Made by a program: the position numbers and the translations under genes. This document shows, in pieces, positions 23,652 through 64,000 of a stretch of DNA of 64,000 nt. The notes under the pieces are model-generated. The model saw only the letters and a program-made list of their open reading frames with translations. It searched no databases and was not told the DNA's origin. Source of the DNA: Utricularia gibba (taxonomy: Eukaryota; Plantae; Magnoliophyta); contig NEEC01000002.1 in the NCBI GenBank assembly GCA_002189035.1, forward strand, positions 62,001 through 126,000, given 5' to 3'. The first letter of the stretch is position 1, and the number at the start of each line of letters is the position of its first letter.

Positions 23652-25883
23652 ATGGAGTGTAACAGAGATGAAGCTTTGAGAGCAAAAGCGATTTCTGAGA
23701 GGAAATTTCTGGCTAAAGATTTCAAGGGAGCAAAAAAATTTGCACTTAAGGCTAAAAATTTGTGTCCCGACTTGGAGGGATTATCTCAGATGCTGTTAAC
23801 TTTTGACGTTTATGTTTCTGCTCAAGACCCAAGAATACCCGGGACATCAAATTGGTATGGAGTGCTGGGTGTCACACCTCTAGATGACGAAGAAACCATA
23901 AGGAAACAGTATCGAAAACTTGCGCTGCTTCTTCATCCTGATAAAAACAGGTCTATCGGATCTGAAGGAGCATTTCAGCTTGTCTCTCAAGCATGGAGTT
24001 TGCTGTCAGATAAGTCAAAGAGAATGGCCTACGACAAGAGTTGTGGTGGAATTTTTCAGAGCAAAAATCAGACTTCCTACAATTTTGCAAACACTGTTTC
24101 TTCGAAAGGTACGGATCCAGTGAAAAAAGTGAGCAAGAGGAATGCCTCATGTGCTCCGCGCTCGTCTCAAATGGAAGAAAAAGACACTTTCTGGACAGTA
24201 TGCCATCGATGTAGGATGCAGTATGAATACCTTCGGATATATCGCAATCACAATCTTCTCTGCCCAAATTGCCAAGAAGCTTACTTTGCAGTTGAAATTG
24301 ACCCCCCTTCCAACCAGAATTCTAAAACTATGTATAGTTGCGCCAGTCAACAACAACGGAAAGCTAAACAACCAGGATCTGGAATTACCACAAACTTGGC
24401 CTGGCAGCAGGAGGCTTTTGATTCTCATAGAAGTAAGAATTCCAGTAACTGCAGTTTTGGATGGACTCCTTTCCAGAAGTCACCTGATGCTCACTCTGCC
24501 GTTCAAGCAGCAAATATGGTTAAGGAGGCATATGAGAAAGTGAAGCGAGAAAGACTGAAGGCACAGAGTGCTTCTAGAAAACAGGAGGCATTGCTGCGGA
24601 GAAATCTTTCCTCGAGAAAAAGAGTAAGTGGTGCATCCTCCAGCAATCCAAATGCTTCCAAAAGATGCAAGGGAGATGAAGATTCCAATATTTATAAGGA
24701 GAAGCCAGTAGACCTTGGTAGTGCAAAGCCTGATCTTAAACAAAATGATGCTTCAAATATTAGGCAGATTTTGATAAAGAAAGCTTGTTCAGAAATATGT
24801 GAGAAGTTGAGTACATGCCTCTCGACATCTGTGGTGAAGAATGCAGCCTCTGTGGAGTTTCATGATAATAGCATAGAAAGGACATCATGCACACAACACG
24901 AATTACCTCCAACCGAGTGCAGATTATCTGAGAATGAACTTGATCAAAACCCTTCACACTCGTGTCCCGAGAGGAATTCGATTGATCAGCTTTCATTGCA
25001 TGTCCATGAGTCTGATTTCCATGACTTTGACATGAGCAGGGGGGTGCATTTTTTTGGGAAGAACCAAGTATGGGCCGTATATGATGATGATGATGGTATG
25101 CCGCGCCATTATGCGATGATTCAAAGTGTAGTATCTTTGAACCCCTTTAGAGCGAGGATGAGTTGGCTTAGTTCGGTAACGCACAGCCGAAGCAGCAATG
25201 CAAGTTGGTATTCCAATGGATTTTCAAGAACATGTGGGAAGTTCCGATTGGGCAAGCAAGTGTGTGTGGATTCAGTGGACTATTTCTCACATCATGTGAG
25301 ATGGAAAAAATGCACGTCCAGTACAATTCTCATATATCCCAGGAAAGGGGATATCTGGGCTTTGTACAGAAATTGGTCCTTGGAATGGAATGAACTGACG
25401 GAAGATGAAGTGGTGCACAAGTATGATATCGTTGAAGTATTGGAAGATTGTGATGATGAGCTTGGTGTGGTTGTGATTCCACTGGTTAAGGTGGTCGGAT
25501 CCAAAGCCATTTTCCATCAGCATTTGGATCCAAGTCAAATACGAAGAATCCCCTGTGAAGAAATCACTCGATTTTCTCATCAGGTGCCATCACATTTATT
25601 TACTGGGCAGCAAGGACTGAAGTTGCTCAAGGGTTGTAGGGAGCTCGATCCTGCTGCGGTTCCATTCGATCTTCTTGAAGCTGCATCATTATTTATTGAA
25701 GGGATTGACGCCCCTGAAAACGTACACATTGTGGAGGAAATTGATTCTAAGGAAAATAGAACCAGCAATCCAGTTGTAGGTGTTACCCTGGACGATGCTG
25801 AGACTGTGAAACAAGTTGACATCGGAAGGAATCTTCCAGTTTCTGACTCATTACAACCTGCTTCGGCCACATCGGACACGTAG
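23652..25883 (+). CDS. DnaJ/J-domain protein with Cys-rich zinc-finger-like region and DUF3444, intronless
   Basis: 743-aa ORF: MECNRDEALRAK..., J domain with HPDKN, TFWTVCHRCRMQYEYLRIYRNHNLLCPNC, and DUF3444-type QVWAVYDDDDGMPRHYA...IYPRKGDIWALYRNW. Confidence 0.95.
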   Translation: MECNRDEALRAKAISERKFLAKDFKGAKKFALKAKNLCPDLEGLSQMLLTFDVYVSAQDPRIPGTSNWYGVLGVTPLDDEETIRKQYRKLALLLHPDKNRSIGSEGAFQLVSQAWSLLSDKSKRMAYDKSCGGIFQSKNQTSYNFANTVSSKGTDPVKKVSKRNASCAPRSSQMEEKDTFWTVCHRCRMQYEYLRIYRNHNLLCPNCQEAYFAVEIDPPSNQNSKTMYSCASQQQRKAKQPGSGITTNLAWQQEAFDSHRSKNSSNCSFGWTPFQKSPDAHSAVQAANMVKEAYEKVKRERLKAQSASRKQEALLRRNLSSRKRVSGASSSNPNASKRCKGDEDSNIYKEKPVDLGSAKPDLKQNDASNIRQILIKKACSEICEKLSTCLSTSVVKNAASVEFHDNSIERTSCTQHELPPTECRLSENELDQNPSHSCPERNSIDQLSLHVHESDFHDFDMSRGVHFFGKNQVWAVYDDDDGMPRHYAMIQSVVSLNPFRARMSWLSSVTHSRSSNASWYSNGFSRTCGKFRLGKQVCVDSVDYFSHHVRWKKCTSSTILIYPRKGDIWALYRNWSLEWNELTEDEVVHKYDIVEVLEDCDDELGVVVIPLVKVVGSKAIFHQHLDPSQIRRIPCEEITRFSHQVPSHLFTGQQGLKLLKGCRELDPAAVPFDLLEAASLFIEGIDAPENVHIVEEIDSKENRTSNPVVGVTLDDAETVKQVDIGRNLPVSDSLQPASATSDT

Positions 25884-58178: not shown

Positions 58179-58571
58179 ATGGGTTTTGTGTGTGCCGTGT
58201 GCGCCCAAGTCGGCGACAAGAAGGATTTGGTCTTCTGCTTCTACTGCATGGAAGCCGCCGTGCACACCGGCTGCGCTGATGTTTTGCCCCCGCCGGGGTA
58301 CCCACCCTGCTTCCTCTGCCAGGACTGCCTCTATGCCGATGAAGAGTACGATGCGATTCTTGAGGAGACGTGCTACGACAGGATCGAACGACTCGCGCGG
58401 TTTCTTGAAGATGGTGGAGAATCTCATCCCCTGATTTCCGGAACCAATGCCAAGGAAGAAGCGGGAGTGGAGGAGGAGGAGGAGGAGGAGGATATCAGAC
58501 CCAGTAAGAAGCGTCGCCTATCGGACGCCCCAGGAGAATCTTTCTGTCCGTCCGCGTCGGCAGACTCGTAG
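58179..58571 (+). CDS. Small protein with a PHD-like C4HC3 zinc finger, acidic tract and basic NLS-like motif
   Basis: CAVC-x11-CFYC-x5-H-x2-C-x14-CQDC spacing, followed by EEEEEEED and RPSKKRR; 130-aa ORF with ATG start. Confidence 0.7.
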   Translation: MGFVCAVCAQVGDKKDLVFCFYCMEAAVHTGCADVLPPPGYPPCFLCQDCLYADEEYDAILEETCYDRIERLARFLEDGGESHPLISGTNAKEEAGVEEEEEEEDIRPSKKRRLSDAPGESFCPSASADS

Positions 58572-59054: not shown

Positions 59055-59558
59055 ATGGGTTCAAATAAGGCCGCTATCGCGCTCACGGCCGCCCTTTTAA
59101 CCGCGGTCGTCGTCATCTCCGCCGCGGCCGATTCCTTCTGCGCAACTGCAAAAGATGCAGCCTTTTGCTCCGATTTGACGGGAGGGGCAGCCACGTGGTC
59201 GGAGGCAATGACGAACGCGCTGAAGGCGGCGCTGGAGAAAGCCAAGGCCGGAAAGTCTATCGCCGACGGCATAGAGGCGGCGCTGCCGGCGGAGATGATG
59301 GGGAAAACGAAGCAATCGCTGATGCAGAGCTGCAAGGAGGCTTACGAAACCGTGGTTTACATTCTGGATCGGTGTCTCGGGTTTGTCGCAAGCGATCCGG
59401 ACTCTTCGATGAATGTCTATCTTTCCGGCGTGTCGCTGTCGGATTGCACCGACGGCCTGAAAGATTTCAACGTTTCGTTGCCGGCGGTGGAGGAGTACGG
59501 CAGGCATATACTCAACCTGAGTAGCGCTCTGCTCACGGTGGCGTCAAAGAAACCGTGA
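59055..59558 (+). CDS. Secreted pectin methylesterase / invertase inhibitor (PMEI-like) protein
   Basis: Signal peptide (MGSNKAAIALTAALLTAVVVISAAA), FCATAKDAAFC (C-x8-C), SCKEAYE, LSDCTD; 167 aa, predicted helical, intronless. Confidence 0.85.
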   Translation: MGSNKAAIALTAALLTAVVVISAAADSFCATAKDAAFCSDLTGGAATWSEAMTNALKAALEKAKAGKSIADGIEAALPAEMMGKTKQSLMQSCKEAYETVVYILDRCLGFVASDPDSSMNVYLSGVSLSDCTDGLKDFNVSLPAVEEYGRHILNLSSALLTVASKKP

Positions 59559-59742: not shown

Positions 59743-60121
59743 TCAGTAGGCGGGCGGCGGCGGCGGCGGCGGTGGCGGTGGCGGTGGCGATTGTGGTATT
59801 CGTGGCTTGGGTAGGTAATGACTCCTTCCCATCGGCGGTGGATGCGGCTGATTCGGTGGATCCTGACGCTTGGAAACTGCGAATTGGAAAATCGTCTCCC
59901 GGTTGTGAAAATGGGTTTCCTCATCTTCAGTTTTCATAACAAACACAACAGAAAAACTCGCAGCAGTCAGTTGTTCAACTTTCTGAGAAGCGAGACTAGA
60001 AAAAGCAACCAAAAAGGTCTCCTTTAACCGCCTCAGTACTCAAAAGGCAGCAGCAACTTACGGCAAGGATGAGTGCAAAAACGAGTGCAGTTGCCCGATC
60101 CTGAACTCGGTGCTTAGCCAT
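59743..60121 (-). CDS. Small secreted Pro-rich protein 1 (about 97 aa), 2 exons (60121-60010, 59924-59743 preferred)
   Basis: MAKHRVQDRATALVFALILAVSCCCLLSTEA-VKGDLF|DEETHFHNRETIFQFAVSKRQDPPNQPHPPPMGRSHYLPKPRIPQSPPPPPPPPPPPPAY*; 85-nt phase-1 GT-AG intron. An alternative 79-nt intron (60061-59983) is also in frame. Confidence 0.72.
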
Positions 60122-60592
60122 CGAAATTCAAATTTCGCCCCACGCCACTCCCTTAACGCGACTGCTCTGACCTCAGGGTAATTCTTGAGACAGTCGCAGT
60201 TGCTGGGCGCGGGCGCATAGAAAAAGAAGGGGAATAAAAATGGGGCCTGTGTGCACATGTGGAATAATCTAAGAGGAGGGAGTGGAATGTGCACTACGTA
60301 ACTTGATACATTCCATCGTCGCTTGACTCGGCTTGTCTGTGCAAGCTGATTGGGCCTCCCAGTTCAGTTGAATGTGTGGATGGACAGCCTCGGTGTCTGA
60401 TCCTGGGTTTGGTAATCAAATCATCACTGTTATCATCTTCCTTGCTTAGATACTCCAACGATAATAGACTATGATTAAGAGGAGAATAGATTCGCAGGGA
60501 CTCCAGTTCCACACACCAAAGCAAACATCCCCTGAATATAGGAAGACTTCCTTTATTAGTCGAGGAGAATGATGCCCTCAAACGCGCACACA

Positions 60593-60941
60593 TTATTTAT
60601 TCAAATCTTTGTTCTTTTCACCCCTCCTGCCACGGCCATGCGGAGCCTCATTCGGTAACGGAGACCCAATCTGATATCCGCGGGGGCGTTTGGAGTCTGC
60701 GATCATCCTCTTCCCCATGTACCAGGAAGAGACTCGAGCATCTTACAAACAGAAGAAAAAATTTGCAAGCCTCCCTCAGTTTTCACAGCATATGCGAATC
60801 ATGGATTGAGGAGGGGAAGCTGGCTGCCGTACCTTGAATGGTGGTCACCCCTGCCTGAGTGCGTGAAAGGCAGGAGTTGAGTGTGGATATGATGAGTAGC
60901 AGCAGCAAGGTCGGAAAAACGACAGCAGCTGCCTTCGCCAT
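60593..60941 (-). CDS. Small secreted peptide precursor 2 (85 aa), 2 exons (60941-60833, 60741-60593)
   Basis: MAKAAAVVFPTLLLLLIISTLNSCLSRTQA-GVTTIQ|DARVSSWYMGKRMIADSKRPRGYQIGSPLPNEAPHGRGRRGEKNKDLNK*; phase-1 intron gtacgg...tttgtaag. Confidence 0.78.
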
Positions 60942-61594
60942 CCCACTTTGTTTTGCTGTGTGTGGTTTCACAATAACAGGAAGGAAGACTGAATCCTATT
61001 AATCAGCACGCCTGCTTACTCTTCTCTTCGTGGGCCGCCTCGGCAGCACTCCGCCTTTGAATCATTCAAACCAACGCAAGGAACCTTCGTCATTTGTCTT
61101 TTGTGGCGCCCAGGGGACGGCATGCCACCACCACAACTTCCGCTTCAACTTAGGAGCATTATCCTCAGCATTATTGAGGCGGAAAACAAGATTCTCTAAA
61201 AACGCCATACTACCTACCACCTCGTCTGCAGCACCCTACAGACTGGTTAAAGCTGCCTGTCGCTCTATTATCAGAGTCGTGAGAACGCACCAAGCTTTGT
61301 TCAATTCCGTGGGTTCTTTAGAATTTCAGGTGCACCCAAATCATGTAACAGAAATGGGTCGGATATATATCTGTGTGCTTTTACTTATGGTTGGATCTTG
61401 ATCAAACGCATGTTATTGTTGCACAACTCACAACCTGAATATATTAATATACATATATGTAAGGATAAGGAAAGCAAGGAGAGCCACCACAGGGCTTTCT
61501 GGTTTCAGTAGAACACGCCAATGCGAATCCCCAGAACAGGAACAAAAAAAGAAAAAGAGCAACTTTATTGTAATCGAGGGGGGAGAGTTGTTCT

Positions 61595-61996
61595 TCAGGG
61601 GTGGTGGACTGGTGGCCAGTCAGGTCTCTTGTACCATGGGAACTGCATCCCGTAGGGGGTTGGGTGGATCTCAATCACAGGCTTCGATTCTTCCAACGGC
61701 CCCAAAATCTTCCTGTTGCTGTACGGGAATGATGCTGCCGCAGCCGCACCTTCAAAAAAGACATCCACCACCAATATCTCAGTGATCTACGGTCTAATTG
61801 CAATGCTATCCTACTCATTTGGGAGATGATGGAGGTTTGAAGAAAAGAAAAGAAAACAGAAAAAATGATCCATCTATCTATCAAGTGGCGTATTGATCTG
61901 ATTTCAGAGACGAAGAAAAGTGAGCTCACCTTGGGGGATCAGCGCCGCGATGATGAACAGCAGGATTGCAAAAACAACTACAGCTGTCTTGGCCAT
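61595..61996 (-). CDS. Small secreted Pro-rich peptide precursor 3 (73 aa), 2 exons (61996-61930, 61749-61595)
   Basis: MAKTAVVVFAILLFIIAALIPQ|GAAAAASFPYSNRKILGPLEESKPVIEIHPTPYGMQFPWYKRPDWPPVHHP*; donor gtgagc, acceptor tcttttttgaag; TATAAAT about 90 nt upstream of the ATG. Confidence 0.85.
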
Positions 61997-62759
61997 GGTG
62001 ATCAACAAATCTAGGCGGCTGGTGTCTCTCTTTCTCCTGCGTCTCCCACCAAAATGTGTAAGAAATACACCTCCGGGGTGTGGAAATTTATAGAAGAGGT
62101 GCTGCCTTTGCCTTTGCCTTGTGTGGGGAGAATACTTATCAATGCCCATGCTTCCTTGTGCGGACTTTACGACCACCCCCTTTGAACATTCAAACCAATG
62201 CATTTTTCTTGTTGACTGCTTGAATTGTATGTACGGAGAATCTTCTAGAGAATTTTGGTCGATTTTGTCACCAACACCAACAATGATTAATTTATTTGAG
62301 TCTTAAAAGTTGTTCCCTAAAATATAGGAAAAATAAGGCAAATACTTTAATTTTTTATTTGATTTGGCGTTTAACTTAGTTATAGCAAAAATTTATAAAT
62401 TATCGAAAAATAAGTTATTCTTTACATTTTATCTTATTTTTATATTTTTTTCGTTTTTTATGTTATTAATAATATTTTTTGGATTTAAAATTTAGGGATT
62501 CAATTTTAAAGTTTAATATTTAGTATTTATAACTTGGGAATATTATATATCAAGTTTTCGTAATTTATGGTTGGATGTTGATCAAACGCATGTTATTGTT
62601 GCAAACTCAGAAGCTGAATATATTATTATTAAGGATAAGGAAAGCAAGGAGAGGCACCAGACGGCTCTCTGCTTTCTTTCAGTAGAAGACGCCAATGCGA
62701 ATCCCCGACAGAGGAACTTTATTGTAATCGACTCGACGGGGGAGAGTTGTTGTTCAGGA

Positions 62760-63115
62760 TCAGGGGTGGCCGACTGGTGGCCATGGGAACGGCGTCCCGT
62801 AGGGAGTTGGGTGGATCTCAATCACACGCTTCGATTCTCCCACCGGCCCCGAAATCTTCCTGTTGCTGTAGGGCGATGATGCTGCCGCAGCCGCACCTTC
62901 AAAAAAGACAACCACCACCACCACCACCAATATATTTCTCAGTGATCTACGGCTAAACGAAAAGAAAAGAAAAGATCCATCTATCTATCTATCTATCAAC
63001 TGGCATATTGATCTGATTAACAGAGACGAGAAACAAAAGTGAGCTCACCTTGGGGGATCAGCGCCGCCATGATGAAGAGCAAGATTGCGAAAACAACTGC
63101 AGCTGTCTTGGCCAT
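62760..63115 (-). CDS. Small secreted Pro-rich peptide precursor 4 (67 aa), tandem paralog of precursor 3, 2 exons (63115-63049, 62896-62760)
   Basis: MAKTAAVVFAILLFIMAALIPQ|GAAAAASSPYSNRKISGPVGESKRVIEIHPTPYGTPFPWPPVGHP*; same splice sites and TATAAAT as precursor 3. Confidence 0.85.
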
Positions 63116-63544
63116 GGAGATCAAATATGTATGAAATACACCTCCGGGTTGTGGAAATTTATACAAGAGGAGCTACCTGCCTTGCCTTGTGTGGGGAGAA
63201 TCCTAATCAATGCCCCTGATTGCTTCCCCTTCTTGTGCGGATTTTACGATCACCCCCATTTGAACATTCAAACCAATGCATTTTTCCTGTTCACTGCTTC
63301 AATCATATGTACGGAGAGAATCTTTTAAATAATTTTGGTCGATTTTGCCACCAAGACCAGTAATTTTTTTGAATCTTAAACGTTGTTCCCTAAAATATAC
63401 AGGGAAAATAAGGCAAGTACCTTAATTGCTTGATTTGATTTGATTTGATATTTACCTTAATTATACCAAAGATTTGTAAACTACCCAAAATAAGTTATTC
63501 TTTGCATTTTTATTCGGTTTTTATGTTATTAATAATAATTTTGG

Positions 63545-63730
63545 ATTTAAAATTTAGGGGTTCAAAAATGATTTAGGGTTTAGGGTTTCACAATTTTTTA
63601 CCGTTACTTATTTAGTGTTTAGGATTTCATGATTGGGATTTAGTTTTTTGGATTTTAAATTTAAATTTTAGAGTTTAAGATTTAAAATTTAGAATTTGAT
63701 ATTCAATTTTACGATTTAATATCCAAGAAT
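63545..63730 (+). repeat. AT-rich tract of degenerate TTTAGGG-like heptamers
   Basis: atttagggtttagggtttc, tttagtgtttaggattt, tttagagtttaagattt, tttagaattt; extends beyond the matching position in the first duplication unit. Confidence 0.6.
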
Positions 63731-64000
63731 TTAAGATTTATCTAAACTGCCTGAAAACTGAACAGCAGACATTTCTGCCTTATCAATCATGAATAAGGCT
63801 ATGTCTGTATGTCTTCTTCATTGGGCGATCTGCATCAGCTCTCCGCGGAAGCTGCCGTGAACAGATATTGCCGGCATGTATAGTACGAGTTCCTCGGATC
63901 GCCGGCTTGGCTTGGTATCTCATCTTAATAATCAATCTGTCATCTAACTTTTGTAATTATCACTCTGCCCCCCAGGCCTACGGTGCCGGCCAACTGGAAA

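Follow-up and report, generated by a model that had tools for sequence, protein, structure and literature searches.

Precursors of post-translationally modified plant peptides, such as those of the CLE, CEP, IDA/IDL, PIP, RGF/GLV and PSY families, are shorter than 100 amino acids (aa) and combine an N-terminal secretion signal and a variable pro-region with a Cys-free Pro core towards the C terminus that is flanked by basic residues; their genes occur in tandem. The CLE motif spans 12–13 residues (R-x-x-P-x-G-P-[ND]-P-x-H-[NH]), IDA/IDL and PIP/PIPL cores are of the PIPPSAPSKRHN type or read SGPSxxGxGH, the sulfated peptides RGF/GLV, PSY and CIF carry an Asp-Tyr motif at the peptide start, and PSK reads YIYTQ. 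Among other secreted products, the glycine-rich proteins of PF07172 come from genes with a single intron, which separates a signal-peptide exon from a second exon of high variability; such genes often stand in tandem arrays. HypSys precursors contain several peptides of the (S/T)PPS type; prosystemin lacks a signal peptide, and tomato systemin holds SKRDPP. The CEP genes known at the time of PMC4197245 are all single-exon and encode a fixed 15-residue domain with Hx5H, most commonly DFRPTAPGHSPGVGH (PMC4197245). Here we describe a cluster of four gene models, A to D, on the minus strand at positions 59743–63115 of a window of 64,000 nucleotides (nt) from Utricularia gibba (contig NEEC01000002.1, positions 62,001 to 126,000; all coordinates count from the first letter of the window). 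From its sequence, we lean towards reading the cluster as a tandem orphan family of two-exon plant genes for secreted pre-pro-peptides, which would have no detectable relatives and belong to none of the described peptide families.

Gene models and predicted secretory signals

The four models could be rebuilt as an initial annotation of the window had given them, and its description of a single shared architecture was borne out. All four products (67–97 aa) begin with M-A-K, all four introns are GT-AG and in phase 1 (taking the annotated model for A), and exon 2 is Cys-free and contains Pro in every case. The splice sites of C and D are near-consensus and the same in both copies, and those of B are good (sequences in Table 1; a slash marks the exon boundary).

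For gene A, which has an in-frame TGA 9 nt 5′ of its ATG, the exon-2 frame is robust across donor choices and the end of exon 1 is not. With a stronger donor, GCC/GTAAGT at 60061 (phase 0), and the acceptor at 59920, the product would be 78 aa long and exon 2 would be read in an unchanged frame; further phase-1 donors at 60057 and 60039 join 59925 in frame. The 12-Pro tail of A is encoded by a 36-nt CCA/CCG trinucleotide run, so its length is likely to be unstable.

The initial annotation had also placed a hydrophobic signal peptide in each exon 1. We assessed this with a heuristic that requires positive charge in the n-region and, next to it, 12 uncharged residues whose mean hydropathy is at least 2.2. 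Twelve of the 1092 ATG-started open frames in the window passed, and A–D took the top four scores, each with an uncharged stretch of at least 12 residues after the charged n-region and a mean hydropathy of 2.85–3.57. The other passes included the PMEI-like gene next to the cluster and the antisense of the B signal peptide. This heuristic test supports secretory-type N termini for all four products.

Base composition follows the exon–intron structure of the models: GC is 0.38–0.46 and T 0.32–0.41 in the introns, against a coding GC of 0.53–0.60 and a T content of about 0.2. T-rich introns beside GC-rich exons are the usual contrast in plants. In codon-usage log-odds trained on the long open reading frames (ORFs) of the window, the predicted frame was the best of six for A–D, and for exon 2 in the sense frames alone it was the best of three for B, C and D and ambiguous for A; the test is weak, with a noisy training set and competing frames penalized for stops. 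C and D each have a TATAAAT box and start in a favourable context, and AATAAA follows the stop in B, C and D.

Paralogy and the exon-2 signature

C and D are the copies of a single tandem duplication with a unit of about 1.07–1.18 kb. They are 88% identical in the promoter, 91% in the 5′ untranslated region (UTR), 92.5% in exon 1, 91% in exon 2, 90% in the 3′ region and 76% in the intron, which is rich in microsatellites. The sole coding indel is 18 nt long and in frame. The signal peptide has a ratio of non-synonymous to synonymous substitution rates (dN/dS) of 0.21 and the mature part one of 1.25, on very few sites. Taken alone, the C/D pair therefore gives no clear protein-level selection signal.

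B has several features in common with this pair. Exon 1 of B and D is 79% identical over 38 nt at the exon start, the pattern MAK.A.VVF is common to both lineages, and the exon-1 protein alignment of B stands out from shuffled sequences (p≤0.001). The CAAG/GT donor lies in the same phase, blocks of the 3′ UTR around AATAAAG recur, and exon 1 of B is longer than that of C/D by 42 nt, an in-frame difference. Upstream, B and C/D also have in common the promoter palindrome TTTGAATG(A)TTCAAA, whose distance to the ATG is similar. In C and D this palindrome, TTTGAA-TG-TTCAAA, lies 140–200 nt upstream of the ATG and is preceded by CATTGG (an inverted CCAAT); the B version keeps both arms with a spacer of 3 nt instead of 2 nt. 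The 20-nt version of the palindrome had no further occurrence in the window (0.01 matches expected), and the element may be a candidate binding site for a dimeric factor. We rejected a reading of it as a conserved heat-shock element, given the 3-nt spacer in B.

Exon 2 of B could not be aligned with that of C/D at the DNA level. In families of secreted peptides, the signal peptide is typically kept while the mature part diverges, and this pattern argues that both the B and the C/D lineages have been translated. B, C and D are demonstrably paralogues, the C/D duplication being young and the split from B older. For A, DNA comparison with the other three genes gave nothing significant; by its motifs, A is probably a more distant member of the family. 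Given this shared descent within B, C and D, the four models are not independent events. A search with tblastn of the four products against the 64-kb window returned no additional copies, and a candidate third C/D-type unit upstream of D was rejected, as only the AT-rich spacer recurs there.

What links A to the others is a set of residues in exon 2. In a four-way alignment, every gene has S-K-[RP] at 17–22 residues from the exon-2 start. N-R-x8-S-K-[RP]-x4-7-H-P-x-P-x-G is common to A, C and D, and B has G-K-R followed by S-K-R-x7-S-P-L-P. Across the six frames of the window, the pattern SK[RP]-x3-8-[HS]PxP has exactly four matches, one per predicted exon 2, and NR-x8-SK[RP] and SK[RP]-x3-8-HPxPxG match only in A, C and D. 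The codons for the shared residues differ synonymously (Arg CGG/AGG, Ser TCC/TCG, Lys AAG/AAA, Arg CGT/CGC and His CAT/CAC), as protein-level conservation would have it. Shuffled versions of A, B and D shared a tripeptide within five positions in 37 of 40000 trials, and at any position in 927 of 40000. Pro-region alignments compared with shuffled sequences gave p=0.0018 for B–D, p=0.011 for A–D and p=0.03 for A–C; a generic spaced-pair statistic for the exon-2 motifs was not significant. Downstream of the signature, the spacing from HPTPYG to the tail differs by six residues between D and C.

Described families, processing and rival readings

The broad class of small secreted pre-pro-peptides, below about 120 aa with an N-terminal signal peptide, accommodates A–D by length and by the heuristic, as well as by a Cys-free mature region with a conserved Pro core, [HS]PxP following SK[RP] in all four. 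The narrower families do not. The products resemble the post-translationally modified precursors in the general features set out above and differ from them in having neither their defining motifs nor a terminal H-N or G-H, and in the phase-1 intron after the signal peptide. No match in A–D was found with regular expressions for CLE, CEP, IDA/IDL, PIP, RGF, PSK, PSY, CIF, SCOOP and RALF, which were written from general knowledge, with the CEP domain checked against PMC4197245. For CLE both strict and relaxed forms were without a match, the SKR of the cluster products is not followed by the H-N of IDA/IDL and PIP/PIPL, and A–D contain neither the DY of the sulfated peptides nor YIYTQ. The layout of PF07172 genes is similar to that of the cluster, but the tails here are not Gly-rich. 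HypSys, systemin and extensins have Pro-rich secreted tails in common with the cluster, and A has SKRQDPP and one SPPPP run, a resemblance only: HypSys precursors are about twice as long as the cluster products, and B, C and D have no such Pro runs.

Pfam searches with the four exon-2 products, full-length C and exon 1 of A and B gave no family match, nor did PF07172 at E≤10 with the same set. Together with the regular expressions, this agrees with the initial annotation, which had recognized no canonical CLE, CEP, IDA, PIP, RGF or HypSys motif. In Pfam searches of six mechanical ORFs on either strand at 58–63.4 kb, only the PMEI-like neighbour and a weak PHD finger were matched. Rfam gave no match over 59–64 kb, and two metagenome DNA scans, with a degenerate VIEIHPTPYG pattern and an exact pattern of B exon 2, were also without a match. 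ESM Atlas look-alikes of the A, B and C exon-2 products were uninformative, with best scores of 0.45–0.74. Nothing relevant was found in the literature on small secreted peptides of Utricularia. A HMMER search with C exon 2 against 1.84 billion representative proteins returned a single match, P0001, which we rejected as an artefact: it is a translated satellite of 2756 aa with about 50 copies of a 55-residue unit, and its E-value of 1.6e-11 to a 50-aa query arises from summing 34 repeats at about 0.5 bits each.

If the favoured reading is right, exon 1 would encode MAK and the hydrophobic core of an endoplasmic reticulum (ER) signal peptide, with the phase-1 intron next. Exon 2 would supply a pro-region of about 20 residues with a basic motif (N-R-K/E, or G-K-R in B), ending in S-K-R, and then a variable Cys-free tail with an [H/S]-P-x-P core, which reads HPxPxG in all but B. 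After co-translational import into the ER, the signal peptide would be cut in its small-residue region, and the predicted positions follow TEA in A and either TQA or CLS in B, and in C and D fall in the Ala run at the exon junction. Such cut positions follow the −3/−1 rule. Proteases of the subtilase or Kex2-like type might then trim the pro-peptide at its conserved basic positions. Site-1 protease (SBT6.1) prefers R-x-x-L, as in the processing of RALF and pectin methylesterase, and KR suits Kex2-like proteases or subtilases; the RKIL of C would suit the former. Prolines may be hydroxylated, and a tail of 17–40 residues would be released into the apoplast, where it would serve in signalling or defence.

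The initial annotation had suggested the basic motifs as processing sites. NRK and SKR proved to be positions conserved between paralogues, which fits that role and makes them candidate sites; C, reading SKP, departs from it. We think it unlikely that the products are processed signalling peptides, and a hormone role is conjecture. Also unlikely is an undescribed family of processed signals built from a signal peptide, an R-x-x-hydrophobic site, an SKR site and an HPxPxG core, perhaps as part of a larger superfamily of the S[KR]R type with expansions at several loci of this probably rootless, carnivorous plant, where each member may have its own receptor.

Among the rivals to a family of processed pre-pro-peptides, there is a small but real chance that the genes are genuine and their products are secreted but act whole, either as antimicrobial peptides rich in Pro or as small, intrinsically disordered proteins of the apoplast or cell wall. 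A would then be extensin-like: it has 12 Pro and, alone among the four, one SPPPP run, and it ends in AY. Pro makes up 22% of C and D, which also have many aromatic residues, but only 7% of B, and all products are far shorter than structural hydroxyproline-rich glycoproteins. The C/D mature part evolves fast, as defence proteins often do, and C has lost the Arg of SKR; the positions that are conserved, however, are the basic motifs and the short Pro core, with no repeated structural unit.

Several observations weigh against reading the cluster as a family of secreted pre-pro-peptides. Within the C/D pair, the mature part has a dN/dS of 1.25 (on few sites) and exon identity does not exceed that of the promoter or UTR, and SKP in place of SKR in C tells against a strict SKR cleavage site. 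The signature patterns were picked after inspection of the sequences, and the family link of A depends on them; a C+D profile recovered neither A nor B from the six-frame translation of the window. The donor of A in the annotated model, TTG/GTTGCT, is weak, and the choice among four candidate donors is ambiguous. B has no TATA box at the position aligned to those of C and D. No homologue emerged from searches in collections of 1.84 and 5.8 billion proteins, word-indexed protein searches with D exon 2, full-length C and full-length B gave no match, and exact look-ups of B, C and D returned no record, with no transcript-derived protein found. Language-model recognition scores are low (1178–1848). 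A relative with no more in common than a motif of about 12 residues could not become significant in these protein searches. The exact look-up also misses the PMEI-like neighbour and a DnaJ gene of the window; because the collections thus cover this genome poorly, the blanks say little about expression.

The same blanks speak for a reading in which some or all of the four are non-functional, that is, young or decaying duplicates of an untranscribed or untranslated ORF whose shared motifs are residual or due to chance. We regard this as improbable, though worth keeping in mind. It draws also on the near equality of C/D exon and flank identity and a mature-part dN/dS of about 1, on the failure of the C+D profile to link A or B, on the missing TATA box of B, and on A, with its ambiguous splice model and microsatellite tail. 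Against this, exon 1 and the start codon are what is best kept between B and C/D while exon 2 has diverged, in-frame changes in length, of 18 and 42 nt, have left the frames open, SK[RP] is conserved in position with synonymous codon changes, and C and D have full promoter, splice and poly(A) signals. Gene by gene, C and/or D are probably expressed coding genes; for A, in some splice form, we incline slightly towards expression, and for B the chances appear balanced or just short of that.

That C and D are very divergent CEP/PIP-type hormones (Pro-rich, with a G-H ending) is highly improbable: D ends in PPVGHP and holds HPTPYG, which loosely recalls DFRPTAPGHSPGVGH (PMC4197245), but C has VHHP, A–D match neither the strict nor the relaxed expression for the 15-residue domain, and CEP membership fails because none of the four models reaches its tail without a GT-AG intron, unlike the single-exon CEP genes with their fixed Hx5H domain (PMC4197245), and because the HPTPYG-to-tail spacing varies between C and D.

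Feature coordinates and neighbourhood

Table 1. Positions of the gene models, their signals and neighbouring features in the 64-kb window
Feature	Position	Strand	Details
Gene D	ATG 63115; intron 63048–62897; stop end 62760	-	Product 67 aa
Gene C	ATG 61996; intron 61929–61750; stop end 61595	-	Product 73 aa
Gene B	ATG 60941; intron 60832–60742; stop end 60593	-	Product 85 aa
Gene A	ATG 60121; intron 60009–59925; stop end 59743	-	Product 97 aa
D exon 1	63049–63115	-	Predicted MAK and hydrophobic core of signal peptide, 22 codons + 1 nt; donor AAG/GTGAGC; 92.5% identity to C exon 1
D intron	62897–63048	-	152 nt, phase 1, T-rich, microsatellites; GC 0.38, T 0.41; acceptor TTTTTTGAAG/GT
D exon 2	62760–62896	-	Poly-Ala (predicted cleavage region), NRK..SKR, HPTPYG, tail WPPVGHP, stop
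C exon 1	61930–61996	-	Predicted signal peptide; start context ACCATGG
C intron	61750–61929	-	180 nt, phase 1; 76% identity to D intron, splice-site flanks identical
C exon 2	61595–61749	-	D-like; SKP for SKR; in-frame 18-nt insertion (YKRPDW); tail WPPVHHP
B exon 1	60833–60941	-	MAKAAAVVF..., predicted signal peptide; 42 nt longer than C/D, phase unchanged
B intron	60742–60832	-	91 nt, phase 1; AAG/GTACGG ... TTTGTAAG/AT
B exon 2	60593–60741	-	GKR..SKR, SPLP, basic tail, stop
A exon 1 (annotated model)	60010–60121	-	3′ end uncertain; alternative ends 60062, 60058, 60040
A intron (annotated model)	59925–60009	-	Weak donor; alternative 59920–60061, donor GTAAGT
A exon 2	59743–59924	-	NR-x8-SKR-x7-HPPPMG, poly-Pro tail from CCG/CCA microsatellite, stop
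CCA/CCG run in A	59752–59787		36 nt
TATAAAT box of D	63157–63163	-	48 nt 5′ of ATG; conserved with C
TATAAAT box of C	62086–62092	-	
Promoter palindrome TTTGAATGTTCAAA	63259–63272 (D); copies 62181–62194 (C), 61056–61070 (B)	.	B copy with one extra base
AATAAA 3′ of stop	62718–62723 (D); 61564–61569 (C); 60552–60557 (B)	-	26–41 nt past stop
PMEI-like gene	59055–59558	+	Single exon, 167 aa
130-aa ORF	58179–58571	+	Weak PHD-finger match
743-aa ORF	23652–25883	+	DnaJ, zinc-ribbon and DUF3444 domains
AAACCCT units	63572–63588		Two units
AT-rich minisatellite	63595–63731		14–21-nt spacing
AT-rich spacer between C and D	62416–62528		

The PMEI-like neighbour noted in the initial annotation was recovered as a gene for a secreted protein that is convergent with gene A, 185 nt away; its Pfam PMEI score is 28.8 bits against a cut-off of 29 bits. 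The 130-aa ORF, with a PHD-finger match of 18.4 bits and an acidic tail, is perhaps an exon of a larger gene. The uninterrupted 743-aa ORF, further away, clearly represents a plant gene. Upstream of D, the two AAACCCT units in the spacer, of plant telomere type, stand beside the AT-rich minisatellite, and the AT-rich spacer between C and D is related to it.

Plant genomes hold many small secreted-peptide genes that are overlooked by annotation based on ORFs and homology, and few families have known receptors. The cluster described here is a well-formed candidate and not yet a discovery; with its positionally conserved basic motif and Pro core, it offers concrete peptides for synthesis and assay.

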